From positions 2,266,797 through 2,330,796 of the forward strand of contig CM121342.1 in the NCBI GenBank assembly GCA_051530055.1: a stretch of DNA of 64,000 nt, given 5' to 3'. How positions within the stretch are numbered: position 1 is the first letter of the stretch; every line of letters starts with the position of its first letter. The position numbers were made by a program, and so were the translations under genes. Shown piece after piece: positions 1 through 54,898 of the stretch. The DNA comes from Neoechinorhynchus agilis (lineage: Eukaryota; Animalia; Acanthocephala). The notes below the pieces were generated by a model, which had not been told where the DNA came from, made no database searches, and was given only the letters and a program-made list of their open reading frames with translations.

Positions 1-1450
1 GCCGTCTGATTTCGGAACCACGTGTAACGGAGGCGCCCACTGGCTGCTTGATCGTCGAATGATTCCGAGCGATTCCATTCTGGCGAATTCCTCTTGTGCG
101 ATGGCTAGTTTCTCAGGTGTAAGGCGTCGCGCGCGTGCGTGGATAGGAGCACAATTCGTTTGAATGTGGTGCCGCACACCATGCTTCACCTCAGTACCCG
201 AGAAATCGTGAGTACTGATGCCCGGGAATGCACTCAACATCTTTGCGTAAATCGAAATTTTTGGACTTGTCATATCCACTTGAGCTACTTCGGTTTATTT
301 TCGTGATGAGGGAATACCTTCTCCCCTGTGGTTTAATGGGTCTACCAACTTTTTTCCACGGACGTCGACTAGCAGTCCGCTGTGTCGAAGGAAATCAGCC
401 CCCAGCAACGGTTGCCGTACAGCTGCGATCAGAAACTTCCACTTAATGGTCCATTTACCAAAACGAAGCACCACCATCCGGCTTCCGAATGTTTTGATTG
501 AGGAGCCGTTAGCCGCGGTAAGTGTTCGGCATTGTGCACTAACTGACTTATCAGCTATCGACGCCGGCATAACACTCACCTCGGCACCGGTGTCCACTAG
601 AAATCGTCGACCTGTCCCACTGTCGTGAACATAGAATAACGTGTTTATTTCCTTAGCAGTTTTTTAAACGCGTCTTGTGCCATCGAACTAGGTGGTCGGC
701 AACGCTTGGCGCGGTTGCCGTACCGTTGGTGATAGAAGCAAATATCCGTTTGCTTCTTTTTGGTTTGTTCGACAGGGAATACGAAATCGGTGTTTTGTTT
801 AATCGATCCCGCGGTGGACCGCTTTGCCCTGAACAATTCGTCTGCTGCTTGTGCAAGTTTACGGGGATCCGTAATCTTGGAGTGAACAAGTACCGAGCGC
901 ATATCCTCAGGTAGCCGCTCCATGAACACCTGCATGAACAAGAAGCAGGGGGTGTTTCCCGAGGTATCCTAACATCTTGTCAATGAGTTCTGATGGTTGA
1001 GCGTCCCCTAGTTCCTCCATGTGTAGAATCCGGCTGGCACGCTCGTATTCCGACAAGGAAAATGTATCGAGTAAGCGGTCTTTGAGTGCGTCGTACTTCT
1101 TTTGCTGCGGCGGAGTCTCCAGGAGATCTATTACTCGTCCGGCAGTATTTTGATCCAGAGCTGCGAGGACGTAATAGAATTTGGTGTCGTCTGACGTAAT
1201 GCTCCTCAGTGCAAATTGAGCCTCAGCTTGTACGAACCACACTCCGGATTGTTCGATCCAAAAAGGTGGCAATTTCATGCTTACCGCTTGAATCTATGCC
1301 TGACTGTCCATATCTTGTTGCTTCGCTAACAAGCGTCGGGGTCACCAATGTAGTTCAACTCAAAAACCAACGCGCTCTGTTTTCTAGTTGTACTCCATGC
1401 ACCATGCGTGCATATCAATTGGTGGACCTCTGACGTACTCGCCACAATCT
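1..1450 (-). mobile_element. Degenerate Ty3/Gypsy LTR retrotransposon (5' part: LTR, PBS, frameshifted gag, protease, start of RT); runs off the window start
   Basis: ORFs 907-1278 and 645-941 (KLPPFW..WFVQAEAQF gag; ICFYHQRYG..A..C knuckle), 295-597 (DTGAEVS protease, GADFL), and 1-90 on minus reads EEFARMESLGIIRRSSSQWAPPLHVVPKSDG (RT start). LTR 3' end CTACA at 1349-1353 next to the PBS. LTR 5' boundary uncertain. Confidence 0.85.
1334..1347 (-). promoter_or_regulatory. Primer-binding site complementary to tRNA-Trp 3' end
   Basis: Minus strand TGGTGACCCCGACG immediately after the LTR end; matches the known eukaryotic tRNA-Trp 3' end (..CGTCGGGGTCACCA). Confidence 0.7.
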
Positions 1451-1589
1451 TATATTTCGGCACAATCCCGTGCATGTTCAGTTTGAAGTCCGCCTTATCC
1501 CCTTCAACTGTTTCAACCTGGCGAATTAAAATGAACTCCATTATAACGCGATTTACTTTGTGCTAAAATGGTTGCATTGTCGATGTCCA

Positions 1590-2465
1590 TGACGTGGTCT
1601 TGTTGCTAAAAATTGTTAAGTATCGCTGAACTGGCATTGGTGCCTCTCCTCATGGCATACTTTAGTTCTTTAATTCTCCTTTGTAAATTGTTTGTATGGC
1701 TTACTTGAGATTTACTGCATTCACTGAAAGGAATTGCTTTCATGTTCATCTCGTTGTGGACGGTAGCAATCACGTTAGTTTTTGTTACCACGATTTGGTT
1801 CACGGATGCCCCTTCGTTTCGACTCTTGGCTCACTGTTTTCCCTCCATAGATGGTCCTGCAACTATCTTTTTCATCATATAGATTGGTTAGCCTTTCCTT
1901 TGAGCATATTCCTTAGAAACTCAAACTCATTATTGAGGGATTCTTGGCTGGAGCATCAGTTGTAGGCACGATCAAACAATGACTTAATCCTGGCCATTTT
2001 ACACTTAATTAGTGCCATCGTGATGAAGGTAAGGACAGTGTATGTCGGTATACCAATCTTCCTGTATACAGTGGGCTCAAATTGTGCTCCTTGTCGAGTT
2101 ATCAAAACGTCCAAAAAGGGGATTGCATTGTCATTCGCCGACTGGACGGTCTATTGAATGTTGCAGTGTTTTTAATTTAACATGCGGCCGAACATTTCCG
2201 TTTTTGTGGATTTGTCGATTAAGATAAAAGTATCATCTACGTATCTCTGCCAGAATTTGACCCACCGTAGGCTGGAAACATACTTTGCTTCCCAATTGCG
2301 AATGAACAATTAGGCGAGAACTGGGGCAAAAGGACTCCCCATGGACAGTCCATAAGCTTCATCATAGCTCTTACCTTCGAAATTGAAATTCGTGTTCCTC
2401 GTGCACATGTATAAGAGTTCCTTACATTAACGTTGAATAATAATTCGTTTTTGTCATCGTGCATA
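1590..2465 (-). mobile_element. Penelope-like element remnant (RT C-terminal half + GIY-YIG endonuclease), frameshifted
   Basis: Minus-strand translations MCTRNTNFNFEGKSYDEAYGLSMGSPFAPVLA, FLDVLITRQGAQFEPTVYRK, KMARIKSLFDRAYN.CSSQESLNNEF, and IPFSECSK..LQRRIKELKYAMRRG..SSAI are PLE RT and GIY-YIG motifs. Confidence 0.75.
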
Positions 2466-2599
2466 AATTACCGTTTGTGTAAGGTTAAAAATTATGTACC
2501 CAATTAAAATACTGATCAAAACCATGCAGTTAATTGCTGATGCCCGAAAACTTTAGAAATCCAATAAATTATCTCTCTGCCATGGCAAAAACAAACAAA

Positions 2600-3260
2600 A
2601 TTCGACCTAAGATTGACTATTAAAGTGGATTTTAGAAATCCTATTCTTTACAATTTATCTATCTTTAACCTTTTCCAAAGAGCGATCTATTTATAGACAA
2701 AAGTATTCTTGCTTATCTCAGAACGATTTTCCAAAAAGCTGCCAATGAAACCTACAATCATCTTGCATTTTTAAAGAAGTTCGAAGGAGCAGATTAGAGC
2801 GCACCTCTTGTGAAATGTATTAAGTTTTGGGAAAGGTTCGAAGTAAAATTGCAGAAGGTTGGGTAGCGTCGGTGGGTGTTGGTAGGATGGTGGGCATATA
2901 GAAGAAGTACTTAAAGTGATTGGATGATAATGCAAGGAATCGGAGGCGTTTAAGAAAATAGAGCTTAACAGAAGCTTCGGGCCGCGTAATTGATATTTGC
3001 TTGTCCCACTTTAGATTTTTCTAAAAATAGATACCAAGGATACGAACAGAGGAAACACAGTTGATAGAAAAATCAAGAGATTGAGGGAACGATTTAAAAG
3101 CACTTGGTTAAGGGTAAGACATTTAGAGGAACAAAATGTTTGAACATGAGAAATCTCGTTAGAAGTAATTGGGAGTGAGAGGGGAGCCGGTGCATGCGTA
3201 ATGATTGTTAGATTATCAGCATACAAGAAGTATTTAGAATAAGAGGACGGAATAAGATAC
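2600..3260 (-). mobile_element. CR1/L2-group non-LTR retrotransposon RT C-terminal remnant
   Basis: FLYADNLTI (YADD-like), SHVQTFCSSKCLTLN, KWDKQISITRPEASVKLYFLKRLR on minus strand; disrupted. Confidence 0.6.
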
Positions 3261-3522
3261 GGCTCGCTTTCTACTCTCAATTGCTTAAGATTTGTGCGAA
3301 CCTTAGTTAAGTGCCCTGCATAATCGACCATTTCGTTTTGTGGTGATTTGTGCGCACGAGAGTGAAATGTCACTGGTTTTTTTGGCATAAATTCTAATAT
3401 CCGTCATCGATACGTACGAAAATCAATTTTATTCTATTGTCCAGCCCGCTTCTAATATCGTCGCTGTACTTTTCCTATAGTTTTTGATGAGTTTGTGTGG
3501 TGATATTGATTATTCACTAAAA

Positions 3523-3600
3523 TGTGCCACTATTAATTTTTCCATTCGCACATAGTGGTGCATTAATGTTTGGTACACTGCGTTTTTGTGTGAATAAAAA
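3523..3600 (+). repeat. 5' LTR of Gypsy element
   Basis: Matches 6239-6293 except for a ~23-bp indel; 3' boundary approximate. Confidence 0.7.
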
Positions 3601-6238
3601 GCTTCTATATTGGTCACAAAAATTTTATTCACACAAAGAGAAAACCGGACATATCATGGATTCGAAGCATTCCGACGTTCAATTGATCTCAGGAAAATTC
3701 TTCAAACCGGAGCTGCTTATTCTGACACCTGATAACCCTGATGCCGAATAATGTTGGAATCACTGGCGGTACAAATTCGAATTATTTCTGAAGTGGTCAA
3801 ACATGTTTAGTGTGGAAGACAAGTTGGATCTCGTAAGAATATCAGTTTCTGCGCAGTTGTTCGACACCATACATTCGTGTTCATCCTACGGTGAAGTGAT
3901 GGAAATGCTTTCCAAGATGTTTCTGAAGCCCAAAAATGAGATTTTCTGCAGATACAAGGTGTATTCAGCGAAACAGGAAAATGGGCAGTCCGTGGCACAG
4001 TACATCGAGAATTTGGAAAACCTAGCCAGGAGATGCTCTTTTGCGAAACCTAACTGCCAGCCAAGCCAAGGATAGTCTCTTATGTGACGCCTTTATTTCT
4101 GGAGTTCGTTCTGACGTAATTCGTCAGCGAATCCTAGAAACGTTGTCAATGGATAAGGCTAAAGCGTTCGATACGGCCCTCACACTAGAAGCCTCTCATG
4201 AACAGGTCAATGACTACGTCGTCCAGAATAATGATGTGGTTGTGAACGTGGCAAAAATTGAAAAGGAGATCGAGTCTCACTTCTCTGATCCAAGGATCGA
4301 AACACTGTCGGTGTTGCACCACTCACGCAATAGCTCTCGTTTTTGTGGGGGAAGATTCACTCAAGAGAGAGATGTCCAGCTCGTAGCGTACAGTGCCATT
4401 TTTGCCATAAGTTGGGGCATTTCCAATCTGTTTGTGAGACTAAAAGAAGAAGCAAACTGCTCACTTCGAGCTGATATAATAAAAGGCTGACAGGCTCTGC
4501 GATACTTTCAAGTCTTCTGACTGAATCTAAAAGCCCTCTCAACGATTCCATTGTAAGAGCTAACATCCTGGGCATTGAGATCGAAGCACTACTTGGTAGT
4601 GGAAGTTCGAGTAATTTTATCAGCGCTGAACTTATTAACACTTTGAATGTGAAAACTGAGCACTGTCCTGTCAAAGTTGTTATGGCTAACGTCGACCACT
4701 CCACTGGAAGCAGTTCGCGGTGTTTCCTAGACATCAAGTTATTTGATAGGGACTATTGGAAGATCGAGTTCCACGTCTTGTCGAAGATTTGTTGTCCTGT
4801 AATTCTAGGGATACCTTTCCTGCGACTTGATTCAATGGTTTCTTTCAAACCAAATGAGATGGCAAGAAAGATCGAATTTGTCAATCAGCTCGATTGCATC
4901 GATTGTGAAACTCCTTCGCTTTTTTCTAACGATTCGACATCCTGGAACCCATTGACCACCCACTCGAGGAGACATCCGCAGCGGATTCGTAGCTTAATCA
5001 ACAAAGAAGTAAAGCGCATGCTAGACGAATAAATAATCGAACAAAGTCGGTATCCTTGGAGAGCAGCGTTTGGTGGTTGATTATTCGAGGACTGTTAATA
5101 GATACACTACCTTGGATGCCTATCCTCTGCCCCGAATAGATGAGATGATCGACATTATATCCAGTTACAAATCTTCAGTCACGTCGACATGAAGTCCACA
5201 TATCATCAGCTACGTTTAAAGGAAGAGGAGGAAGTCTTTACAGCTTTCGAAGCGAATGGACGACTTTACCAGTTTCGAAGAATCCCACTTGGTTTGGCAA
5301 AAGCAGTTGCTGTGTTCCAGAGGATTGTTGATGGCATTATTGAGAAGGAACAGCTGGATGGCACGTTTGATTATCTTGATGATGTTATCATTTTTGGCAG
5401 CGATCAAGCCGACCATGATAAAAAGCTCGCGAAATTTCAAGAGGTTGCTCGAAAATTAAGGATACGGTTAAACCCGTGTAAGAGCTTGTTTAATGTGCGG
5501 AAAATAAGGATTCTCGGTTATGAGGTTTGTAATGGAAAGAAACATCCAGATCCTGAGTGGTGGCTTTGGAAAAGCTCAGATTACCTGATTCGGAGAAGTC
5601 GTTGCGACGAGTTTGGGGATTGTTTGCTCACTGTGCAAAATGGGTGAAAAAAATTTCCACTCTTGTACGTCCTCTTGGACAGGTCGAGCGGTTCAACGGG
5701 ATAATCTGGAAAACGATTCGACTTGCACGGAAGGATAGATCGCTCGACATTTGCTATTGGGAAACAGTGCTCAGTGATGTACTCCAAGCAATTTGCTGCT
5801 TAGTGAGCACTGCCACTGGGGGGGGGTACGCCTCACGATAGGATATTTCGATATCAGAGAAAGCCGTTAATTAAATACCAAATGCCAGATCGGTTGTCGC
5901 CTGGAATTATCTAGGTTCGCAATTTCAATCTAACCAGCAAGAACGAGGATGCAGTCGAAGAGGCTTTATTAAAGACAGTCAATCCGCACGATGCCATGAT
6001 CGACTTGAAAGACTGAACTCAAAAGATCGTTTCCATTAAAGATTTGACCCGCCTCCCCATAAACAATGAGGAAGAGAGTGAAGTTCAGATCAACGATTGA
6101 AGCTAGTCTCAGGAGGGCGCTGAGATAGATTGTGAGAATGAAAACACCGCTGCGAACGAGGAAGTTACTGAAATTCTCCCGCGTCGAAGTTCTAGGATAA
6201 AGAAGAAGCCGGCGTATCTGAACGATTATGAGGAGGGA

Positions 6239-6293
6239 TGTGCCACTATTGATTTTTCCAGCTTGGAGCACTACGTTTTTGTGTGAATAAAAA
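6239..6293 (+). repeat. 3' LTR of Gypsy element
   Basis: Follows polypurine tract; matches 3523-3600; 3' boundary approximate. Confidence 0.7.
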
Positions 6294-6639
6294 CCCACGG
6301 AATTACCAGGGAGGCCGACAAGACGTTTACTACAATCGCGACAGGGAACATAGCCGAAATAGAAACTTCAGTAAACCACGGAGCTTTTACAATAGAAGAT
6401 AATGTTGAAAAGCCGGCGATTATGGTCTTATTACAAAAAACGTTATAAATGCTTAATTTGTGCTTTTGTTTTAAAAATAGTTTTAAAGTTTTACTTATAA
6501 TTCTATTGAAAGTGAAGCGGGCATTGGAACCGTGTCTCGATTTTCATTAAAATTCGGTAATTAAAAGCAGACATCTAGGCATCTCTTTACTTTGAACCAA
6601 GCTTATTTATGGAGCTAATATTAATATTTACGTTTAAGA

Positions 6640-9095: not shown

Positions 9096-9612
9096 GCAAT
9101 CAAATTAGAATTTTGGTGTGAGCATATTCCCCCTCGGGCATAAGATATTTATTTGAAATATTTCACGAGCATACCTCATCTTTGCTTGTTTATGGCGTAA
9201 AAATTAAAAGAATTTTGGTTAAATCTGATTGTTTTCGGAGGCACAATATTGTGACATTATAAAAAGGTTGCTTGTAAGTTTTTGAGTCACATATTTGAAA
9301 AAAGTTACAATAGACCTTGATAAATGCGTACAGCCATCGGGGAAACCTGATGCCGGTCCCAAGTCCGGATAAATGGGGAGGGTTGGCAGCAGGAAGGGCA
9401 TCCGGCTGTAAAATATTTTGCTTCAATAAAACCAAAAAAATAGATGATAAATGCGTACAAGATTGTGCCTCCAAAAACAATTGGATTTAACTAAAATTCT
9501 TTTAATTTTTACGTGAAAAACAAGCATGAATGGTTCAGTCTTCAATCAACTTCATATTTCGTGCTCTGGAGTATGCTCACACCAAAATTCTAACATAATG
9601 TTTATTGATTGC
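9096..9612. mobile_element. MITE-like foldback element with nested inverted repeats
   Basis: TTAGAATTTTGGTGTGAGCATATTCC (~9105-9130) pairs with GGAGTATGCTCACACCAAAATTCTAA (~9568-9593); inner arms ~9195-9260 and ~9447-9513. Confidence 0.55.
9333..9444 (+). ncRNA. 112-bp insertion carrying a P1-type twister ribozyme (5' strand missing), A-rich tail, 15-bp TSD
   Basis: GCC-ATCGGG(GAAA)CCTGAT-GCCGGTCCCAAGTCCGGATAAA-TGGG-GAGGG-TTGGC matches the twister consensus segment GCCGGUCCCAAGCCCGGAUAAA-P2'-GAGGG-P1'; TGATAAATGCGTACA duplicated at 9318-9332 and 9445-9459. Confidence 0.7.
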
Positions 9613-9702: not shown

Positions 9703-10785
9703 TTACTTTCGATGTACGAGCAATCCAGCGTACTTTATGACTTGGGTAAGCAGCTCCTGATTGCTCAATATATACTTTTTGAACCCTTCAGTTTGTGTAA
9801 CGTCTTCAGTATGATACACAATGTATTTTACAGTGTATTGCACCAGTTGCTTAGCGTTTAATTCGTTTGCATGAAAGAGCATTTCAGCCGCATTATCGGG
9901 CCGTACTACTGAAGTGAGTTTCCTTTCTAGAATCGAAACGAGATCATTGAGCTTATAGTGATGGGCAGCACAGAAAATATCAATTAAATCGCCTTCGTAG
10001 GGAACGGATTCAGTGTACAAGTAGTCGAGGATGCTTTTGATGGTTGCAGGTAAAAAACCGGTAGTTTTTACACGTTTAGGAAAGTCCCCAGTAGCATCAC
10101 GTTGCGTAAGCAGTTGTTTCAAAGTTGGACATCGAGCTGCGAGAACTACACGGTGTGCTTTTATAACCTCTTTTTTCTCTTGATCATCTCCGTATACCAC
10201 GATTTCCACATCACTTGCCTCACCCGATTTAAGAATTTTAGCCATGTCGGAAATGAGTTTAGATTCGCAAATTTTCGGAAGTCCTTCAATATCAACGGGA
10301 ACAGTTATGTGCTTGTCCATAATCGATATCCTAGCAAGAATGCTGATTCGATCGTCAAGTTCAAGAGTATTAAATATCAAGTCATGATGAATTTCTGCAC
10401 ATCCGTATGGCCTTTGACTGATTTGGCAATCGTCGTCCGGTGTATATACATTGTAGACTTCCCCAGATGAAATCTCATATTCCGCCCGCCCCTTAGCGTT
10501 ATCCATCACGATGTAGAATCTCACTCGCATTCTGATATTTTCAGTTCCTGATTCGTAGTCTAAGCGGACGTACATCCGATCGGTTAGAAGTCCAAATACT
10601 CCTTTTGGATAGCAATGAATCCTAAGTTTTATTGAGCTCAACGATGAGGTACTAAAAGCCTCAGGAGGTGAAATTATTGGAGTTTTAAGATGGACAACGT
10701 ATTCTGGGTCTTCTACAAATGACCTGAAATTATCAATCACCCACAAATGTGTAAAATTGTTGACGGGCATGTGAGTGCATGACAT
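9703..10785 (-). CDS. SPOP: MATH-BTB (SPOP/roadkill-like) Cullin-3 adaptor, single exon, 360 aa
   Basis: N-terminal MATH (FTHLWVIDNF), BTB (SDVEIVV..IKAHRVVLAARCP..ILDYLYT..AHHYKL), BACK-like C-terminus (ENAAEML-type PDNAAEMLFHANELNAKQL). Divergent; orthology not proven. Confidence 0.88.
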   Translation of the reverse strand: MSCTHMPVNNFTHLWVIDNFRSFVEDPEYVVHLKTPIISPPEAFSTSSLSSIKLRIHCYPKGVFGLLTDRMYVRLDYESGTENIRMRVRFYIVMDNAKGRAEYEISSGEVYNVYTPDDDCQISQRPYGCAEIHHDLIFNTLELDDRISILARISIMDKHITVPVDIEGLPKICESKLISDMAKILKSGEASDVEIVVYGDDQEKKEVIKAHRVVLAARCPTLKQLLTQRDATGDFPKRVKTTGFLPATIKSILDYLYTESVPYEGDLIDIFCAAHHYKLNDLVSILERKLTSVVRPDNAAEMLFHANELNAKQLVQYTVKYIVYHTEDVTQTEGFKKYILSNQELLTQVIKYAGLLVHRK

Positions 10786-11129
10786 GCCATCGATTGTATC
10801 GAACTCCTTGTTGTTACTGGATAAATGATAAGATTATTACTTAAACTTTAAACAAAATCTATCCGATTACCTAACGTTAATCGTTTGTTTATCCATCTCG
10901 GGCGAGTAGTCCTCTGTGCTACATTTTTGCGCTTCCATGTTGTAAAAAGGGACCAAAGGGGCTCCAAGAAATTCGCCTCAATGCCAAAGGCAATATCTTT
11001 TCTTGGGTGTTTTTAGCAAAACCCCACTAGAAGCCACCTCACGGCAGCGTCCAATAACATTCATTAACGTAGCTTGACGCGTATTGGTAAACATTTATGT
11101 AATAAATACCGATTAATACTTGTCAACGA

Positions 11130-11690
11130 AGCAATTAGGTAATTCCAATAATTTAATATAATTTTTGCAGAGTATCCTCGAGAATGTCTCCACAAAAAAT
11201 GGATGGAAAATGTAGAATCGACGAATCTGGGCATTTGTATTTCTCTCTTTTTTCGATCTTCCGCCTTTTCAACACTTCGTCGGTGGCTATTGGAACTGTC
11301 AACTCGGTAATTCCAACAATTTAATATGATTTTACAAAATATTCTCGAGAATGTCTCCGCAAAAAATGGTTCGAAAACGTAGAATCAACCAATCTGGGCA
11401 TTTGTAATTCTCTTTTTTTCGACCTTCCGCCCTTTTCGCCACTTCATCGGCGGCTCCTGGAACTGCAGGGGATAAGTCCTCGTTATCAATTAGGTAATTC
11501 CAATAATTTAATATGATTTTACAATGCATCCACGAGAATGTCTCCGCAAAAAATGGTTGGACAAATCTAAGCATTTGTATTTCTCCCTTTTTCGATCTTC
11601 CGCCATTTTTGCCACTTCATCGGCGGCTCTTGAAACTGCAAGGGACAAGTTCCGGTTATCAACTAGGCAATTCCAATAATTCAATATGAT
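11130..11690. repeat. Tandem array of 170-187-bp diverged units, apparently derived from a REL-endonuclease C-terminal segment
   Basis: AATTCCAATAATTTAATAT recurs at ~11139, 11309, 11496, 11668; minus strand reads PGAADEVAKRAEGRKKENYK..FVQPFFAETFSW, similar to CRE REL PGGAATAAEERKRTKY..FVPYGVETL at 16303-16785. Confidence 0.6.
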
Positions 11691-12270
11691 CGAGTTTTCC
11701 CTACGAGGGGTTCAGCTCGTTTTCTCTACAGGGCGAGCTTTTCCCTCTTCGAGATTTATTTGTAAACATGCAAATTTTCGAGGCCTCGACCTCCTTATCA
11801 AGCATATAAAATCACATGTAGTAGGGGAGCTCATTTGATCCCTGGACTCGTGTGAGCGGGGCCATCAATTTCCGAGGTGACGCTTCGCCCTGTGCGCTAC
11901 TGCTCCACGGAGCTTATTAGTTGGAAGGACAAGAGCAAAGTTACTCTTGTTGCCTTCAGTTGTCCTCTCCGCATTGATGAGAAGAACTTCCTTGATCAGA
12001 GCCTTCTTTGGAGCCCGTTCTCCACCATTTTCACCTTCGTTCCTCCGAAGTCGATTGTGTGGTCGATTTGCACGGCGAGGTTGAAGATGGCCGATGACAC
12101 ATCACTCCGTTTGAGTGCGTATTCATGCTGCCGATCTCTTTTCAAAATATCCTGCTTCGTTTGTCCAATATAGAGACATGGTCACAGTTTTTGTAGGGTT
12201 AAGGAGATTGAAGCCTCGAAAATTTGAATGTTTAGAAATCTCGAGGAGGAAAAAGTCGCCGTATAGAGAA
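11690..12270 (-). mobile_element. 5'-truncated Penelope-like insertion (GIY-YIG C-half, pLTR with hammerhead, inverted pLTR fragment at the other end); repeated at 12646-13226
   Basis: Minus strand LYIGQTKQDILKRDRQHEYALKRSDVSSAIFNLAVQIDHTIDF..RRL-IKEVLLI; plus-strand 12197-12270 is a degenerate inverted copy of the pLTR (AAGGAG..GCCTCGAAAATTTG.ATGTTTA.AAATCTCG). Confidence 0.7.
11766..11807 (-). ncRNA. Minimal type-I hammerhead ribozyme with U3-A8 covariant core (copy 1)
   Basis: Minus: ATATGC-TTGATAA-G-GAGGT(CGAG)GCCTC-GAAA-AT-TT-GCATGT; 6-bp stem I, 5-bp stem II, palindromic AAUU stem III. Confidence 0.65.
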
Positions 12271-12721
12271 AGTAATTTAATATGATTTTGAAATGTATCC
12301 ACGAGAATGTCTCCGCAAAAAATGGTTCGAAAACGTAGAATCAACCAATCTGGACATTTGTAATTCTCTTTTTTTCGACCTTCCGCCCTTTTCGCCACTT
12401 CATCGGCGGCTCCTGGAACTGCAGGGGACAAGTCCTCGTTATCAATTAGGTAATTCCAATAATTTAATATGATTTTACAATGCATCCACGAGAATGTCTC
12501 CGCAAAAAATGGTTGGACAAATCTAAGCATTTGTATTTCTCCCTTTTTCGATCTTCCGCCATTTTTGCCACTTCATCGGCGGCTCTTGAAACTGCAAGGG
12601 ACAAGTTCCGGTTATCAACTAGGCAATTCCAATAATTCAATATGATCGAGTTTTCCCTACGAGGGGTTCAGCTCGTTTTCTCTACAGGGCGAGCTTTTCC
12701 CTCTTCGAGATTTATTTGTAA

Positions 12722-12763
12722 ACATGCAAATTTTCGAGGCCTCGACCTCCTTATCAAGCATAT
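12722..12763 (-). ncRNA. Minimal type-I hammerhead ribozyme with U3-A8 covariant core (copy 2)
   Basis: Identical to 11766-11807, offset 956 bp. Confidence 0.65.
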
Positions 12764-14018
12764 AAAATCACATGTAGTAGGGGAGCTCATTTGATCCCTG
12801 GACTCGTGTGAGCGGGGCCATCAATTTCCGAGGTGACGCTTCGCCCTGTGCGCTACTGCTCCACGGAGCTTATTAGTTGGAAGGACAAGAGCAAAGTTAC
12901 TCTTGTTGCCTTCAGTTGTCCTCTCCGCATTGATGAGAAGAACTTCCTTGATCAGAGCCTTCTTTGGAGCCCGTTCTCCACCATTTTCACCTTCGTTCCT
13001 CCGAAGTCGATTGTGTGGTCGATTTGCACGGCGAGGTTGAAGATGGCCGATGACACATCACTCCGTTTGAGTGCGTATTCATGCTGCCGATCTCTTTTCA
13101 AAATATCCTGCTTCGTTTGTCCAATATAGAGACATGGTCACAGTTTTTGTAGGGTTAAGGAGATTGAAGCCTCGAAAATTTGAATGTTTAGAAATCTCGA
13201 GGAGGAAAAAGTCGCCGTATAGAGAAAGTAATTTAATATGATTTTGAAATGTATCCACGAGAATGTCTCCGCAAAAAATGGTTCGAAAACGTAGAATCAA
13301 CCAATCTGGACATTTGTAATTCTCTTTTTTTCGACCTTCCGCCCTTTTCGCCACTTCATCGGCGGCTCCTGGAACTGCAAGCGACAATTTGTTTCTGTTC
13401 CCAAGGAGACGGCGCCTTCTTTCTCATGGAAATTTAATGACGTAATTACGTAATTTGCATTTTTGAACGCGCGGTTGAGAGCAGAAAGCGTTTAATTCGA
13501 CACGTTCATCGCTTGATAACGAGCATACACAATCAATTCGTCACGTATTTTCGGTTATTACGGTGAGTCACGTGTTCGCGTCACGTTGGAACGTGTGAAT
13601 GTAAACACACAGGAAAACCTATCGTCGATTGGTTTCTTCAGAAGGCGTTTTCTGAACAACGTTTTCGCTGCATAGTGCGTACTCTGATCGTCTTGACTGC
13701 TCTTCGCTCACACGCAAAAAATCGAGCTGTTCAAGCCGTGATGACGTCGCCTTGAAAAATTACAGGAATCTGTCGATTGTATTAAAATCAGTTTCGATCG
13801 CCATGCTTTAGATTCTAACGCTACCTCGGGTTCTTTTCCTTTGATTTTAATTGAGATTTTATTAGGTTTAAATGGGTCTTTTTCTAACTGATTGGGTTCA
13901 TAATCACATACCTGGAAGAATAGATCGATCGATTTTAAAATTCTAATGTTCAAATAGGGCGTTATTCATAAAAAAAATTTAGGACTGCCTTTCGCACTTT
14001 TAGTTTTTTCTTTGTGAG

Positions 14019-15999
14019 ATGGCATTTCGTCACAGACCTCGTCATGGACGTAACCGCAACTACGATTACGACGACATGGAAGATGATGACCGGGGTGGTT
14101 GTCAAAATAATGGAAGACGCCGAGGATATCGTCAGCGGCTGGACTACTTTGTTCCAATGCGATTTGGATATCGACGTAACGACCGCGATTCTATGGACGA
14201 AGGATGGTTTCGTGCGGTTTTGCCTGGCGTCACAGCGGAAGATCTCTCAAAAAGTCAACTATGTTCAATGCTCAACGACCGTAGCAGTATTCCCATAACT
14301 GTGTATCACTATCAACAGGACGAAATGAGCAACCGAATCATATTTTTCATCAATAGTCGATCAGAAGCTCAGGAGATAAAAGCGATGAGTCGGCGATTCA
14401 GCGTTCAGAACCGGAACGTTCAGATATTTGTTAGCCGTGTGCCCGAACCGACGTTTGCTATGACCGATGAACTTCAAGATGTTCTACGTCGCTATTTGTC
14501 GTCTCGGTATAATGAAGACGCTTGTATTCTCTCACTTGCGTCAATATCACGAAACGAGAGTTTTCGTTCAGAAGGAATATATCTTAATCTAAGCCGCTCA
14601 AACGTCTTTGCTTCCCTTATGACCTTGTGTGAGGAATCTTTCCCAAACACTGTGATTCTTGATCTTAGTGGTAATGGTCTTTCCAGCCTGGATGTGCTGC
14701 GTGGACGTCTTCCTCATGTTAGTCGTCTCAATCTTGAACAAAACCGAATTCATCGACTTCGGGAACTCGATTATGTACGCCACATGCAACTCATTGAACT
14801 CTCCATTGGAGAAAATCCTCTATGCCGTCAATTCTCTAGTTTTGATGATTTAACAAGTGCCGTTAGAGACAAATGTCCTAAACTAAACATACTTAATGGA
14901 ACAAATCTCCCTCCTAGAATCGGATTCGCCATCGATGACGAACCCGTTACACTACCACAGTCAGTGTCGTTCAATGTTCCAGAAACATTCCGTGATGTTA
15001 TTGCTCAATTTATCAATGAGTATTTCCGATTCTTTGACTCTGGACGTGAAGAACGACAACCTCTAATGAACATCTACACTGACGACGCCGTTCTCTCATT
15101 TGCGGTCAATTGCGGATCAAGGTCTTTCAGGTTCGATCGGTACATTAAAGAAGGTAGAAACTTCATAAAAGTCGTAGAAGATCTCAGTAGACACGACCGG
15201 CTCAAACGTGGTCGATTCGATATTGTTTCGTTTTTTGTAAAGTTCCCAAAAACGACTCATGATCCAGAATCGTTGAAAGTTGACCTGTTCGCCTGCACTT
15301 CCGACCGTATTTCGTTCTCAATCACTGGCCTCTTTCTTGAAGAATCGTCAGAACTCTCTTCTGTCTCCGTCCCCGCCACCGCTGTTGGCGCTGCTGGTAA
15401 CGGTTCCTCGAATGAAAGGCCCAATTTAGTAAGGCAATTTTTCCGTGTGTTCCATTGTATGATCATGGACAAAGCTCAAAAGACTTTTAAAGTGTTCGTT
15501 GAACATTTCACTGTGTCTGAAGCAAGTCAAGCCCAAGTTAAGCAGGCTAAGTTTCCTGCACCCGCGACTCCTTTACCTTCGACCAATCAACAATTAACAG
15601 TTCAAACTTCGGTTTCAATAGCCATCAGTGGTTCCCTAAAAAAATGATGCACAACAACAGCCTTGCGCTGCTGGAATCTGTGTCAATGGTGGTGGTAGCT
15701 TCTTCTTTTTCCGCTTTAAAAATCCGTGTTCTTGACCATATATTTGGGTCAACGAAACAGTTTGTACTTTTTGAGGGGAACCACTGGTCGTAAATGACTC
15801 AATTGAACCGACTCCTATAGAAAAGGCGAAATTAGTGGAGAAAATAAGAAAGACTACTTCGCTGACCATGAGTTACGCTCACGAATGTCTACGAGCCAAC
15901 AAGTGGAATTTTGATACAGCACTCAAAAACTTTCTGGAACTTAAAGAAAACAAACAAATACCAGTCGATGCATACGATCCGACTTTGGCGGATCAGTAA
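14019..15999 (+). CDS. NXF1: Nuclear RNA export factor NXF1/TAP (RRM, LRR, NTF2-like, then TAP-C/UBA in a separate frame after a 161-bp insert)
   Basis: ORF 14019-15647 has Arg-rich N-terminus, WFRAVLP RRM, LDLSGNGL/LNLEQNRI LRR, FINEYFRFFDSG..KFPKTTHD NTF2; 15775-15999 encodes TAP-C (LTMSYAHECLRANKWNFDTALKNFLELKENKQIPVDAY). The join between them is uncertain. Confidence 0.88.
15626..15786. mobile_element. hAT-like MITE (161 bp) inside NXF1
   Basis: Terminal inverted repeats CAGTGGTTCCC(C)T.AAAAA at both ends; no clean TSD visible. Confidence 0.55.
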
Positions 16000-16302: not shown

Positions 16303-16785
16303 ATGCTACATTGTCCCCCCGGTGCCCTGAATACTGTGAATGCGTCCAACATCCTTGAGCCGAGCAATCTTTGCCGACTCTATGGCCGTAGACCGGACGG
16401 TGTCACAGTATTCTCGGGGCGAGGGGAGGCAAATGTCTTCTCTGGGACGCCATTCGCAGCCAGCAACATAAAATTCGCCACCATTAAACCAGGGGGAGCA
16501 GCAACCGCCGCTGAAGAACGCAAAAGGACAAAATACAGGAACCTGAGTCGAAATCATTATTTTGTTCCCTATGGCGTCGAGACACTCAGATCGTTTGTTA
16601 CCGCGGCGCAGGACCTGGTCAAGCAATTGTCTAAGAGACTGAGGCGAATATCTGGCGATCCGAGATCAGGAGCATTTCTCCTACAAAACATAAGTCTGGC
16701 TGTGCAACGAGGGAACGCTGCATCCGTCCTTTCGACTGTTACACCAGGACGGCAGCTGAGTGATCCAGAGCGGCGGCGTGAATGA
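16303..16785 (+). mobile_element. CRE-clade non-LTR retrotransposon 3' fragment (restriction-like endonuclease)
   Basis: LEPSNLCRLYGRRPDGVT..AAEERKRTKY..HYFVPYGVET..LLQNISLAVQRGNAASVL (PD..D/E.K REL). Confidence 0.75.
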
Positions 16786-18467: not shown

Positions 18468-18650
18468 AAAGTCTTTATGCCTTCCAGTAAATGATTTTTA
18501 TTAAAGACGTTCTGCGAACCTCGTTGGGTTCATCATCGGTTCTTTAGTTATTAAAAGACGCTTAAAACCAACTAACAAACTGATGATGAACCCAAAGAGG
18601 TTCGCAGAACGTCTTTAATAAAAATTATTTACTGGAAGGCGTGAAGATTT
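18468..18650. repeat. Inverted repeat (~74-bp arms, ~35-bp spacer) with degenerate hammerhead-like core
   Basis: GCCTTCCAGTAAAT.ATTTTTATTAAAGACGTTCTGCGAACCTC.TTGGGTTCATCATC pairs with 18577-18650; right arm CTGATGA-T-GAACC..GGTTC-GCAGAA-CG-TC. Confidence 0.8.
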
Positions 18651-29399: not shown

Positions 29400-29830
29400 C
29401 CGCAAAATTGGGGCTTCTCTCCTTCCTCGGCTGTCGCTATCACGCTAGCAGCATTGCCTCTGTACTGCGCGCGAGATATTTTGTCGTAGGAATACACCTT
29501 CTCGTGCGTAGGCGGTCTCTCAATTTATTCGAGAGATCCTGGAGCAGAGTGCCGAGCTGCCAAGCGCTCCATACGTCTCTACTCCGAAGGGGACAAAATA
29601 ATGGGCCCTTGCTAATTCTCTATATTTTCGTACCTTCCTCCCTTCCGCTGCAACTCCAGCGATTTTGAGAAAGTACCGAATGTTGCTCACTGCGAGGGAG
29701 TCCACACACGTGACGACCTGGAGAAGGCATTTGCCCTCCCACCACGGAAAGAGCGAAATTCCGTCAGGTCGACGACCGTCTAGTCGACAAAGATGGGCGG
29801 GTTCCAAGATGTTGGCGTGAGAACCTTCCT
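29400..29830 (-). mobile_element. CRE-clade REL endonuclease fragment
   Basis: LEPAHLCRLDGRRPDGISLFPWWEGKCLLQVVTCVDSLA..HYFVPFGVETYG..FLRQNISRAVQR. Confidence 0.75.
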
Positions 29831-30045
29831 CCTGACTTTCGGCAAACGAGACCGTGTCACCCGAAAGCATCAACCAAAGACGGGAGACCAAGTGACAATA
29901 GATAATTTCGTTTTCATGGTTAAGAAATATTTCGAAAGAGGAAGCTTCTTCAGTCATCTAAAAACTTTATTCTGTGCTGAAGTGTGCATCCCTTACACGG
30001 CTTGGGCACATCCCTCCGGATCCTCAGATACCTCCCGAGGAGGTG

Positions 30046-46428: not shown

Positions 46429-46978
46429 ATGTATCATTCTTATCTTCACCGTGCTCCTTTCTTTTCTGCTCTATGCATTCTCAGTCACTTGTGGTCGAGC
46501 CTCAAACCAAAATGCTTTGAAAACGGAACTGAAAATGGAATACTTAAAAAAGCATTCGAACCAGGAAGCCCCAGGGGCAAATTCTAAAACTACAATGCCA
46601 ACAGATCCGTCCTCGTACCTTCAAAGTGTAATAAATACGACGGCTGTAGAGGACGTTCCAGTTCGCGATGATGTGCTCCGATATTTCAATGGGATTTTTG
46701 GAAACCTTCTTAATCTGATAAAGTTAAACGAAGGATGTTATTGCAACGATATCAGGATGGAGACAATCATTAAGCTTCTAAAAACAAGGGATAAACTATA
46801 CGAAAAATATACGAAAATAGGAAAGCCGCCAAAGCATCTACCGGATAAACATGTTCTCGAAATAGCCAAATGCTTCGATCCATACATTGAGTGCCTTGCC
46901 AAAATGGATCGCATGGGATTTCAGTTTATGATGATGATGTTTGACCGGTTCAAAAATGTCGTAAATCGTAAAATTTAG
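46429..46978 (+). pseudogene. Secreted orphan protein, copy A, +1 frameshift in codon 4
   Basis: ATGTATCATTCTTATC versus ATGTATCATTTTATC in copies B and C; downstream frame is identical in amino acids to copy B. Confidence 0.75.
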
Positions 46979-53090: not shown

Positions 53091-53639
53091 CTAAATTTTA
53101 CGATTTACGACATTTTTGAACCGGTCAAACATCATCATCATAAACTGAAATCCCATGCGATCCATTTTGGCAAGGCACTCAATGTATGGATCGAAGCATT
53201 TGGCTATTTCGAGAACATGTTTATCCGGTAGATGCTTTGGCGGCTTTCCTATTTTCGTATATTTTTCGTATAGTTTATCCCTTGTTTTTAGAAGCTTAAT
53301 GATTGTCTCCATCCTGATATCGTTGCAATAACATCCTTCGTTTAACTTTATCAGATTAAGAAGGTTTCCAAAAATCCCATTGAAATATCGGAGCACATCA
53401 TCGCGAACTGGAACGTCCTCTACAGCCGTCGTATTTATTACACTTTGAAGGTACGAGGACGGATCTGTTGGCATTGTAGTCTTAGAATTTGCCCCTGGGG
53501 CTTCCTGGTTCGAATGCTTTTTTAAGTATTCCATTTTCAGTTCCGTTTTCAAAGCATTTTGGTTTGAGGCTCGACCACAAGTGACTGAGAATGCATAGAG
53601 CAGAAAAGAAAGGAGCACGGTGAAGATAAAATGATACAT
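53091..53639 (-). CDS. Secreted orphan protein, copy B (182 aa from ATG, intronless, signal peptide, 4 Cys in mature part)
   Basis: Intact ORF MYHFIFTVLLSFLLYAFSVTCG-RASNQ..; hydrophobic N-terminus; GCYC and CFDPYIEC. Confidence 0.8.
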   Translation of the reverse strand: MYHFIFTVLLSFLLYAFSVTCGRASNQNALKTELKMEYLKKHSNQEAPGANSKTTMPTDPSSYLQSVINTTAVEDVPVRDDVLRYFNGIFGNLLNLIKLNEGCYCNDIRMETIIKLLKTRDKLYEKYTKIGKPPKHLPDKHVLEIAKCFDPYIECLAKMDRMGFQFMMMMFDRFKNVVNRKI

Positions 53640-54349
53640 CAATAAATTCCTTGGTATAATGTTTTCTAGTATATAATTTGGAGATGTTAAATAGTTCGAA
53701 GATTGTGTACTAGCAACTAAAAGATATATTGACTATAAACAAACTTAGTTTCCTATGGCAAATATAATTTTGTAAACATCGAGTGAACGAAAATACACTG
53801 TGAATAAATAAAATGTGGACCTAATTTGTTTAACAAAAATATTCGAATGAGGCATTTTGATTTTTAGAGCATAGTTTAAACTTTATCAATATTTTTAAAA
53901 ATACTCGAAGAGAATTTATCCAAAAAAATTCTTGTGACACAAAAACAGTTGATAATATTCTCTAATATTCATTTTACGGGCATTTGTTCAAACCCAGATA
54001 TCTTAGTTTCAAAGGGATTTGATATCTCTTAGCATAATATCGAAAAAGCGTAAATAAAACGAAAGTAAAAAGTTTTCAAGATCAAAGCTATCTTTGCGCC
54101 CGAGCGGATTTTATGGTCCAAAAAAAGAATGCATAATAATCCCGCTAATATGATTTTCACTTTTGAGATTTCACATTTTGTTTATTAACAGTGTATTTTC
54201 GTTCACTCGATGTTTACAGAATTATATTTGCCATAGGAAACTAAGTTTGTTTATAGTCAATATATCTTTTAGTTGCTAGTACACAATCTTCGAACTATTT
54301 AACATCTCCAAATTATATACTAGAAAACATTATACCAAGGAATTTATTG

Positions 54350-54898
54350 ATGTATCATTTTATCTTCACCGTGCTCCTTTCTTTTCTGCTCTATGCATTC
54401 TCAGTCACTTGTGGTCGAGCCTCAAACCAAAATGCTTTGAAAACGGAACTGAAAATGGAATACTTAAAAAAGCATTCGAACCAGGAAGCCCCAGGGGCAA
54501 ATTCTAAAACTACAATGGCAACAGATCCGTCCTCGTACCTTCAAAGTGTAATAAATACGACGGCTGTAGAGGACGTTCCAGTTCGCGATGATGTGCTCCG
54601 ATATTTCAATGGGATTTTTGGAAACCTTCTTAATCTGATAAAGTTAAACGAAGGATGTTATTGCAACGATATCAGGATGGAGACAATCATTAAGCTTCTA
54701 AAAACTAGGGATAAACTATACGAAAAATATACGAAAATAGGAAAGCCGCCAAAGCATCTACCGGATAAACATGTTCTCGAAATAGCCAAATGCTTCGATC
54801 CATACATTGAGTGCCTTTCCAAAATGGATCGCATGGGATTTCAGTTTATGATGATGATGTTTGACCGGTTCAAAAATGTCGTAAATCGTAAAATTTAG
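54350..54898 (+). CDS. Secreted orphan protein, copy C (182 aa; differs from B by P>A and A>S)
   Basis: Intact ORF; head-to-head with copy B; upstream TATATA-like box conserved in all copies. Confidence 0.8.
   Translation: MYHFIFTVLLSFLLYAFSVTCGRASNQNALKTELKMEYLKKHSNQEAPGANSKTTMATDPSSYLQSVINTTAVEDVPVRDDVLRYFNGIFGNLLNLIKLNEGCYCNDIRMETIIKLLKTRDKLYEKYTKIGKPPKHLPDKHVLEIAKCFDPYIECLSKMDRMGFQFMMMMFDRFKNVVNRKI

Follow-up and report, generated by a model that had tools for sequence, protein, structure and literature searches.

A 112-bp insert in the loop of an inverted repeat

The genomic stretch analysed here, 64 kb from the acanthocephalan Neoechinorhynchus agilis (contig CM121342.1), will be referred to in its entirety as the window, with positions counted from its first letter. 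Close to a BTB-domain gene it carries an insert of 112 bp with a truncated twister ribozyme core, which an original prediction made from the letters alone had taken for a retroposed, twister-headed short interspersed nuclear element (SINE) or retrozyme. The comparisons described below place the origin of this insert in the 5' leader of a twister-headed, RTE-like retrotransposon.

On either side of the insert stands the same 15-bp sequence, TGATAAATGCGTACA, at 9318-9332 and again at 9445-9459, forming a perfect direct repeat in the context ...CCT TGATAAATGCGTACA before the insert and TGATAAATGCGTACA AGATTG... after it. These are the only two occurrences of the sequence across the window, and none of 100 shuffles contained two or more matches to it even when two mismatches were tolerated. 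The perfect target-site duplication (TSD) that had been claimed is thus borne out, and the 112 bp with an A-rich tail are present between its copies, at 9333-9444, just where they had been predicted. Within these borders the order is GCC ATCGGG GAAA CCTGAT GCCGG TCCCAAGT CCGG ATAAA TGGG GAGGG TTGG CAGCAGGAAGGGCATCCGGCTGTAAAATATTTTGCTTCAATAAAACCAAAAAAATAGA. The duplication, together with the match to retrotransposon 5' ends described below, upholds the view that the insertion arose by retroposition.

Near the duplication we also observed that the pentamer ATAGA occurs at 9310-9314, 3 nt before the 5' TSD copy, and at 9440-9444, as the final 5 nt of the insert. The pair may be due to chance (~1% by a post hoc estimate), to an extended imperfect duplication or to extra complementarity between the target and the RNA.

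The DNA that received the insert is an inverted-repeat (foldback or MITE-like) sequence covering 9105-9593, with the insert in its central loop. Its arms (9105-9252 and 9457-9593) contain a 70-nt pair at 9183-9252 and 9457-9526 that is 89% complementary and a 26-nt pair at 9105-9130 and 9568-9593 that is 96% complementary. A second copy of this inverted repeat was sought in the window and none was found, which leaves the name MITE (miniature inverted-repeat transposable element), used in the original prediction, plausible and approximate. Further copies of the insert or of its tail were likewise sought in the window, and none was found.

The insert contains a 5'-truncated twister core

When the insert alone was compared with the Rfam twister-P1 model (RF03160), it aligned to positions 12-68 of the 68 in the model and was flagged as 5'-truncated, with 42.4 bits, E=1e-8 and posterior probabilities that were high along the cmscan alignment except in the P3 loop. 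The aligned core occupies 9333-9386 on the plus strand. It begins with the GCC of L2 (9333-9335), continues with P3 (ATCGGG/GAAA/CCTGAT, a 6-bp stem with a GAAA loop; 9336-9351) and P4/L4 (GCCGG-TCCCAAGT-CCGG, in which P4 is CCGG/CCGG; 9352-9368), and ends with the conserved ATAAA (9369-9373), the P2' strand TGGG (9374-9377), the conserved GAGGG (9378-9382) and the P1' strand TTGG (9383-9386). The conserved twister residues GCC, L4 GUCCCAAG, AUAAA and GAGGG all fall within 9333-9382. Each of the motifs named in the original prediction (GCC, P3, P4/L4, ATAAA, TGGG, GAGGG and P1') lies at the coordinates it gave. Model positions 1-11 have no counterpart in the insert, so that the 5' P1 strand and the cleavage site (U|A, here U|AA) are absent, as had been noted, and the 5' strand of P2 is missing as well. 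A twister scan of the entire window returned a single match, the insert, with E=4.9e-4.

The twister-P1 score, although significant, is below the gathering score of the family (67.2 bits). An Rfam scan at that threshold accordingly gave no match, owing to the truncation of the copy, and E-value mode was used instead. The complete twisters of the relatives introduced below also fall short of the gathering score, at 48-53 bits, as would suit a family in which the flank provides P1. Minimum-free-energy folding of the insert gave z-scores of -0.5 to -1.0, a measure that is uninformative for pseudoknotted RNA. Rfam scans (E<=10) of 9200-9600 and of 9333-9444 contained no SINE head of the transfer RNA, 7SL or 5S type.

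One may ask whether the truncated core could still act as a functional or domesticated ribozyme, or belong to a retrozyme-type circular-RNA element, with the missing strands supplied in cis by the flank, in trans or by circular permutation. If flanking sequence is added, cmscan does thread UUGA-UAA-(AUGCG)-UACA on P1, L1 and P2, and the tail of the insert holds UCAA-UAA-A-ACCA, which could pair with P1' and P2'. The threading, however, requires a 5-nt insertion between UAA and P2 and lowers the score to 35.7 bits, a cost of 6.7 bits relative to the truncated alignment. The flank is therefore no substitute for the missing P1 and P2 strands, and we rejected the idea that it rescues the ribozyme. 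A circularly permuted twister built on the tail (UCAA-UAA-AACCA) was rejected too: UAA with a three-of-four match to P2 should turn up by chance about once in 50 nt of A-rich tail (by estimate), and the relatives have no such sequence. P1 pairing in any case carries no weight in the family (40.5% paired in the alignment presented below), and the insert is a single copy that lies antisense to the adjoining gene and has no tandem or second ribozyme. We regard a functional ribozyme as very improbable, and self-cleavage of the window copy would not be expected from its sequence. The term retrozyme is not supported either, because there is one truncated twister in the window with neither a second copy nor a tandem arrangement.

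The insert matches the leaders of twister-headed RTE-like elements

Relatives were reached by translating the insert, in which one sense frame is open from end to end, and searching the resulting peptide against a protein collection. The search gave one match, P0004, encoded on a 35-kb eukaryotic contig (L002) from the ENA metagenome assembly ERZ25069412. There, a complete twister (48.4 bits) is followed by a 496-aa reverse-transcriptase frame and the element closes with AATAAAGCCTGTAGA(AGA)n. On either side of it is a TSD of 19 bp with one mismatch, the 5' copy of which stops exactly at the U of U|AAUCCAGCC. A search with this reverse transcriptase led to an 801-aa protein, 94% identical, on a second contig of the same ENA sample (L003). 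The L003 element is 3.1 kb long and has a complete twister (53.3 bits), frames with Exo_endo_phos (a weak match) and RVT_1 domains, an (AGA)n-type tail and a TSD of 19-20 bp ending at the U of U|AAACCCAGCC. The complete motif reads U|AAACCCA-GCC in L003 and U|AAUCCA-GCC in L002. The RTE parent with a complete twister motif that had been predicted thus exists in these two elements, with TSDs that end at the cleavage site. We call them RTE-like from their architecture alone, that is, a single endonuclease and reverse-transcriptase unit of ~3.1 kb with a microsatellite tail.

Over the 74 nt from 9348 to 9421, identity to the window is 93% in L002 and 92% in L003. The aligned region begins in the 3' strand of P3, spans the remaining ribozyme and takes in 35 nt of leader, and the TSD brackets exactly the stretch that has homology outside. 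A match of 92-93% that continues from the ribozyme into the leader leads us to conclude that a twister-headed RTE-like RNA was the source of the insert, which derives from its 5' leader. P3 differs, being a longer, interrupted stem in L002 and L003 and the 6-bp GAAA-loop stem in the insert, with pairing kept, as expected for a variable peripheral helix. The leader portion at 9387-9421 (plus strand) is collinear with the leaders of L002, L003 and a further element, L006. It follows that the insert is not almost entirely ribozyme, as had been proposed: 54 of its 112 nt are twister, and 9387-9421 is conserved RTE 5' leader.

Next to the ribozyme this leader contains a conserved 15-nt box, GCAGGAAGGGCATCC at 9389-9403 (plus strand), followed by GGCTGTAAAATATTTTGC. 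In the form GCAGGAA[G/C]GGCATCC the box is common to N. agilis, L002 (10168-10182), L003 (9397-9411), L005 (~3797-3811) and L006 (41-55). The latter two are RTE-like elements that also carry the head of twister plus box. In L005, from Channa argus (GCA_033026475.1), the twister is at 3717-3795, ~200 nt upstream of the reading frame, and in L006 (GCA_024449705.1) the twister head is cut by the contig end. Another relative, L004, has no twister at E<=0.01 and is probably 5'-truncated. The teleost elements are more distant relatives, with ~60% protein identity.

Several side observations concern the box and the relatives. The box (GCAGGAAGGGCAUCC) is kept even where the reverse transcriptases of the elements have only ~60% identity. 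Its GGCAUC is the complement of the GAUGCC at the P3/P4 junction, and an alternative helix between the two segments could compete with the active fold. Among named sequences, the nearest relatives of the L002 and L003 reverse transcriptases are teleost elements (Hemibagrus, Pangasius, Lucifuga and Channa). Horizontal transfer is conceivable, as N. agilis parasitises fish. We recovered no transposon proteins of N. agilis itself, because repeats were masked ahead of gene prediction in its genome paper (PMC12690905).

Short twister-headed elements are abundant in metagenomes

A scan of Joint Genome Institute (JGI) metagenomes with the exact 22-mer AAGTCCGGATAAATGGGGAGGG gave 0 matches, and a scan of JGI contigs with a degenerate twister-plus-box pattern, GAGGGTTN{2,5}GCAGGAASGGCATCC, gave at least 120 loci. 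These loci (L007-L126) come from samples Ga0056108, Ga0056133-135, Ga0209259, Ga0209459, Ga0209782 and Ga01263xx. Most are short, non-coding elements. RTE protein similarity was present in only 3 of the 120, and 64 had an RTE-like 3' module within 600 nt (median element length ~268 bp). Their layout is a twister, the conserved box, a body of ~120 nt, the RTE-like 3' module (...CCCGGAAAAAGGGCCGTAAAACGGTT) and a (GT)n or (GTT)n tail. At nine loci, clear TSDs of 12-16 bp beginning at the cleavage site delimit elements of 170-430 bp. A literature search of incomplete coverage found no description of twister-headed SINE-like elements.

In an alignment of 50 related twisters, P2, P3, P4, T1 and T2 were 91-94% paired, with compensatory changes in 13 pairs, and the pairing scores of shuffled and slid controls were far lower. 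P1, the 5' strand of which comes from the target site, was only 40.5% paired. This pattern matches the published model in which each insertion brings a new, random P1 strand (PMC8501958).

At eight of the loci (L019, L029, L039, L044, L048, L095, L106 and L122) a partial extra copy of the first 15-25 nt precedes the full 5' end, as in ACCAAGCCACGGGGGTA|AACCAAGCCACG... These extra copies have the appearance of template jumps made by the reverse transcriptase on reaching the 5' end of the RNA.

The ~270-bp metagenome elements resemble the insert in being short, non-coding and flanked by TSDs and in having the same ribozyme architecture and box. Some copies even start at GCC, exactly as the window copy does. 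They differ from it in keeping an RTE-like 3' module of at least ~45 nt, a (GT)n or (GTT)n tail and a body of ~120 nt, none of which is found in the window copy.

The 5' end of the insert is an ordinary truncation

The RNA of the parent type starts with AA(A)-CCCA/UCCA-GCC, and the insert starts with GCC. It is therefore 6 nt short of the 5' end of the cleavage product. The 5' TSD copy ends in CA, which is also the end of the P2 5' strand in the relatives (CCCA/UCCA). Judging from this coincidence, the CA could represent microhomology at the 5' junction, in which case the shortfall would be 4 nt. The TSD abuts the cleaved ribozyme end exactly in L002, L003 and 70 of 109 JGI copies, whereas in the window the junction lies 6 or 4 nt inside.

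Such a shortfall is not out of keeping with the family. The 109 evaluable JGI copies comprise 70 that start at the A after the scissile bond, 10 that start one nucleotide later and ~29 that are truncated by 2-55 nt. Two of the truncated copies start at consensus position 7, which is the start of the N. agilis copy, and one of these two, L069, begins with GCC. The 5' end of the insert is thus an ordinary 5' truncation for the family, and the simplest assumption is a template that began at the cleavage site or close to it. Reverse transcription from the 3' cleavage product had been proposed. The retrocopy part of that proposal stands, but the intact product is not what was captured, since the AA and the P2 5' strand are missing.

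The last 23 nt of the insert can be read in more than one way

Secure homology to the leader ends at 9421. Beyond it lies the A-rich end of the insert, TTCAATAAAACCAAAAAAATAGA (9422-9444, plus strand), the final 21 nt of which are CAATAAAACCAAAAAAATAGA. These nucleotides are either a continuation of the leader as far as the ATGATG start region or a short RTE 3'-end module (AATAAARCC).

If the leader is followed across this point, the compared sequences read TGCCAAACCAAATCA|TGACGCGG in L002, ...ATCA|TGATGCGG in L003 and L006, and TGCTTCAATAAAACCAAAAAAATAGA|TGATAAATGCG in N. agilis. The reading frame of L003 is opened by ATGATG, and the first 4 nt of the 3' TSD copy, TGAT, are also found at the corresponding place in the leaders of L003 and L006. 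This correspondence suggests that the insert may end where the leader ends, through internal priming by TGAT microhomology. Should that be correct, the parent leader would read ...TTGCTTCAATAAAACCAAAAAAATAGATGATG..., in line with internal priming.

The tail can also be compared with RTE 3' ends. Its AATAAAACC resembles the terminal GGGAATAAAGCC of L002, L003 and L006 and likewise the RTE terminal motif AATAAAGCC. If it is a 3' module, the 3' end of the N. agilis RTE would be ...TTCAATAAAACC(A)n or ...CAATAAAACC(A)n and the insert would be a derivative in which 5' and 3' ends were joined by deletion. Neither comparison is decisive: 139 of 2000 shuffles scored at least as well as the tail against the L002 leader, and 44 of 2000 did so against the L006 3' end. 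The remaining tail alignments, including those with the 3' ends of L002 and L003, were not better than shuffles. The insert has no microsatellite 3' tail and ends in AAAAAAATAGA, in contrast to the (GAA)n/(AGA)n or (GT)n ends of the relatives.

These comparisons bear on the possibility that the insert belongs to a family of miniature twister-SINEs, in which a 5' twister and leader are fused to the last ~20 nt of the 3' end of the N. agilis RTE. Such an element would be transcribed by read-through, trimmed by its ribozyme and mobilised in trans by the RTE enzyme, and the window copy would be a member that is 5'-truncated by 6 nt. Twister-headed non-autonomous elements do exist in the JGI metagenomes, the tail resembles RTE 3' ends (with only 44 of 2000 shuffles doing as well against L006), and the perfection of the TSD implies a young insertion and a source that was lately active. 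Nevertheless, there is a single copy in 64 kb, the L002 and L003 3' ends align with the tail no better than shuffles, and collinearity with the leader could extend over all of the insert. The tail furthermore has no microsatellite and lacks the CACCGGC...hairpin module, which is still present in the shortest of the JGI elements (170 bp). We consider a miniature twister-SINE possible, though on the unlikely side. More tentative still is the idea that the insert represents an ultra-short, promoter-less, ribozyme-headed class of retroposons in Acanthocephala, composed of the twister, the conserved 15-nt box and an RTE tail of ~20 nt. If true, this class would be among the smallest mobile retroelements known, and the ~270-bp metagenome elements would be its larger relatives.

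The A-rich end admits another explanation, namely that an RTE leader RNA was prematurely polyadenylated and then copied by a different, poly(A)-dependent long interspersed nuclear element (LINE) in the fashion of a processed pseudogene. AATAAA at 9425-9430 would be the polyadenylation signal and the run of seven As at 9434-9440 the poly(A), and the true TSD would be ATAGA(CCT)TGATAAATGCGTACA, with a loss of 3 nt in one copy. The hexamer is indeed followed by the A run, the presence of ATAGA at 9310-9314 and 9440-9444 would be accounted for (a coincidence of ~1% by the post hoc estimate given above), and a LINE-1 ORF2 homologue is included among the transcripts of N. agilis (PMC12690905). But the run begins just 3 nt past the hexamer and shares one base (9440) with the pentamer, a LINE of the poly(A) type was not found here, and an imperfect duplication with a 3-nt deletion is less parsimonious when a perfect 15-bp repeat suffices. 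This explanation strikes us as improbable.

A retrocopy of the leader as the preferred origin

We lean toward the view that the insert arose as a retrocopy, dead on arrival, of the leader at the 5' end of a twister-headed, RTE-like retrotransposon without long terminal repeats (non-LTR), and specifically a one-off copy, a reading that we hold to be somewhat probable. In the parent family, read-through transcription from upstream DNA is followed by cleavage at U|A by the 5' P1-type twister, which sets the RNA 5' end, and the cleaved RNA is copied into a new site by target-primed reverse transcription, leaving a TSD (PMC8501958). For the window copy, the endonuclease would have nicked the two strands of the inverted-repeat loop at points staggered by 15 bp. 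Synthesis of complementary DNA would most likely have begun within the leader, close to the start codon, at a point where target (TGAT...) and leader agree in sequence, so that the product was limited to approximately the first 118 nt of the RNA. The 5' junction would then have been sealed 6 nt (4 nt if the CA is microhomology) before the RNA 5' end, with the outcome that the ribozyme core from GCC to P1' and at least 35 nt of leader were retained. The resulting copy has no scissile site, P1 or P2 5' strand, coding sequence or recognisable RTE 3' end, and it is therefore unable to cleave itself or to move autonomously. It is a known kind of element, published in Schistosoma, that appears here in a new phylum and with an unusual, leader-only extent.

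Several points weigh against the leader-retrocopy interpretation. An RTE of N. agilis was not recovered, and the parent is inferred from elements of other organisms. The window contains no second copy of the insert and no RTE coding sequence either, as judged by tblastn with the L002 reverse-transcriptase open reading frame (496 aa), a query that did not include the endonuclease part. The start of the insert lies 6 nt inside the cleavage product, so that a cleaved template is consistent with the data and not proven by them, and the leader homology past 9421 is not statistically secure, being equalled in 139 of 2000 shuffles. Finally, RTE reverse transcriptases are generally thought to require their own 3' end. 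A leader-only RNA would for that reason be a poor template, which favours the miniature element over the leader retrocopy.

Relation to known ribozyme-bearing retroelements

A link between P1-type twisters and RTE 5' ends, on which the original prediction had relied, is found in the literature. All 113 full-length Perere-3 elements (RTE clade) of Schistosoma mansoni begin with twister variants, their TSDs abut the cleavage site, and the ribozymes have proved active both in vitro and in reporter constructs (Liu et al. 2021, PMC8501958). RTE superfamily elements are stated to conserve truncated twisters at their 5' ends (de la Pena et al. 2020, PMC7761336). Perere-3 variants without the A residues and P1 have been described as inactive end products (PMC8501958). 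L002 and L003 resemble Perere-3 in that a P1-type twister forms the extreme 5' end of an element with endonuclease and reverse transcriptase, and in these two elements and the JGI copies, as in Perere-3, the TSD abuts the U|AA site and provides a random P1 5' strand. GAGGG-UUGG and L4 GUCCCAAG are conserved in common with Perere-3, whereas the host of the window copy is an acanthocephalan and the P2, P3 and leader sequences differ. Unlike Perere-3, the window copy consists of leader only (112 bp) and has no coding part, repeat tail or P2 5' strand.

The conserved box and the short twister-headed elements are more useful leads than the window copy itself. The twister-RTE partnership, shown experimentally only in S. 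mansoni, is extended to an acanthocephalan and, through the relatives, to the teleost Channa argus and several further animals. The related copies provide independent genomic support for the published model, because most of them start at the cleavage site and all twister helices covary save P1, which each target site supplies at random. The abundance of short twister-headed elements, moreover, shows that a ribozyme can stand in for the promoter-bearing head of SINE-like retroposons.

The hepatitis delta virus (HDV)-like ribozyme of L1Tc is shared with the non-autonomous derivative NARTc. The twister-headed elements are similar to L1Tc/NARTc and to R2 in that a ribozyme sets the 5' end of a promoter-less non-LTR RNA and is passed on to short non-autonomous derivatives. 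The HDV-like class differs in cutting at its own 5' edge, so that daughters keep the whole ribozyme, whereas the P1-type twister loses the 5' strand of P1 in each cycle. An HDV-like ribozyme occupies the first 77 nt of L1Tc of Trypanosoma cruzi, and ribozymes of this class are also present in R2 (cited in PMC6765202). The Sm-alpha SINE of Schistosoma, which carries a hammerhead ribozyme, and the retrozymes (PMC6765202, PMC4918200) are likewise short non-autonomous retroelements with a small self-cleaving ribozyme. In both of these the ribozymes are hammerheads, however, and retrozymes need two ribozyme copies and a circular RNA, whereas the insert has a single truncated twister.

Neighbouring gene and other features of the window

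The gene next to the insert, KAL7670158.1, is located at 9703-10938 on the minus strand and has one intron of 54 nt. Its spliced product is 393 aa long and its unspliced frame 360 aa. The insert lies 259 nt beyond its stop codon, antisense to the gene. The gene had been called SPOP-like in the original prediction, a designation that is approximate, since BTB is the sole Pfam domain detected. A homology search with the BTB protein returned only the query itself, and an exact-protein look-up of the unspliced 360-aa frame gave no record. The window copy is inert, and an effect on this gene is not evident.

Elsewhere in the window, a 542-aa NXF-like protein is encoded at 14019-15647, and its exact match locates the window on CM121342.1 of assembly GCA_051530055.1. 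Three near-identical gene copies of 175-183 aa with an N-terminal hydrophobic leader are found at 46451-46978 (plus strand), 53091-53642 (minus) and 54347-54898 (plus), two of which form an inverted pair. A tandem duplication of ~956 bp at 11332-13387 contains identical 98-aa frames at 11877-12173 and 12833-13129 along with near-identical frames on the minus strand. Decayed LTR-retrotransposon remnants lie at 1-6300 and 57400-62750, with gag-like, protease, RVT_1 (5189-5647 and 59093-59686) and integrase rve (60344-60901) frames that are broken by stops and frameshifts. The frames at 16303-16785 (plus strand), which has no Pfam match, and 29520-29957 (minus strand) have the motif RPDG...KYR.L...HYFVPFGVET.G in common, which suggests that they may contain a repeated, element-derived domain. 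A long hairpin at 18500-18619 scored 51.7 bits against the plant microRNA family MIR837, the gathering score of which is 117, and is most likely of the foldback or MITE type and not a microRNA gene.

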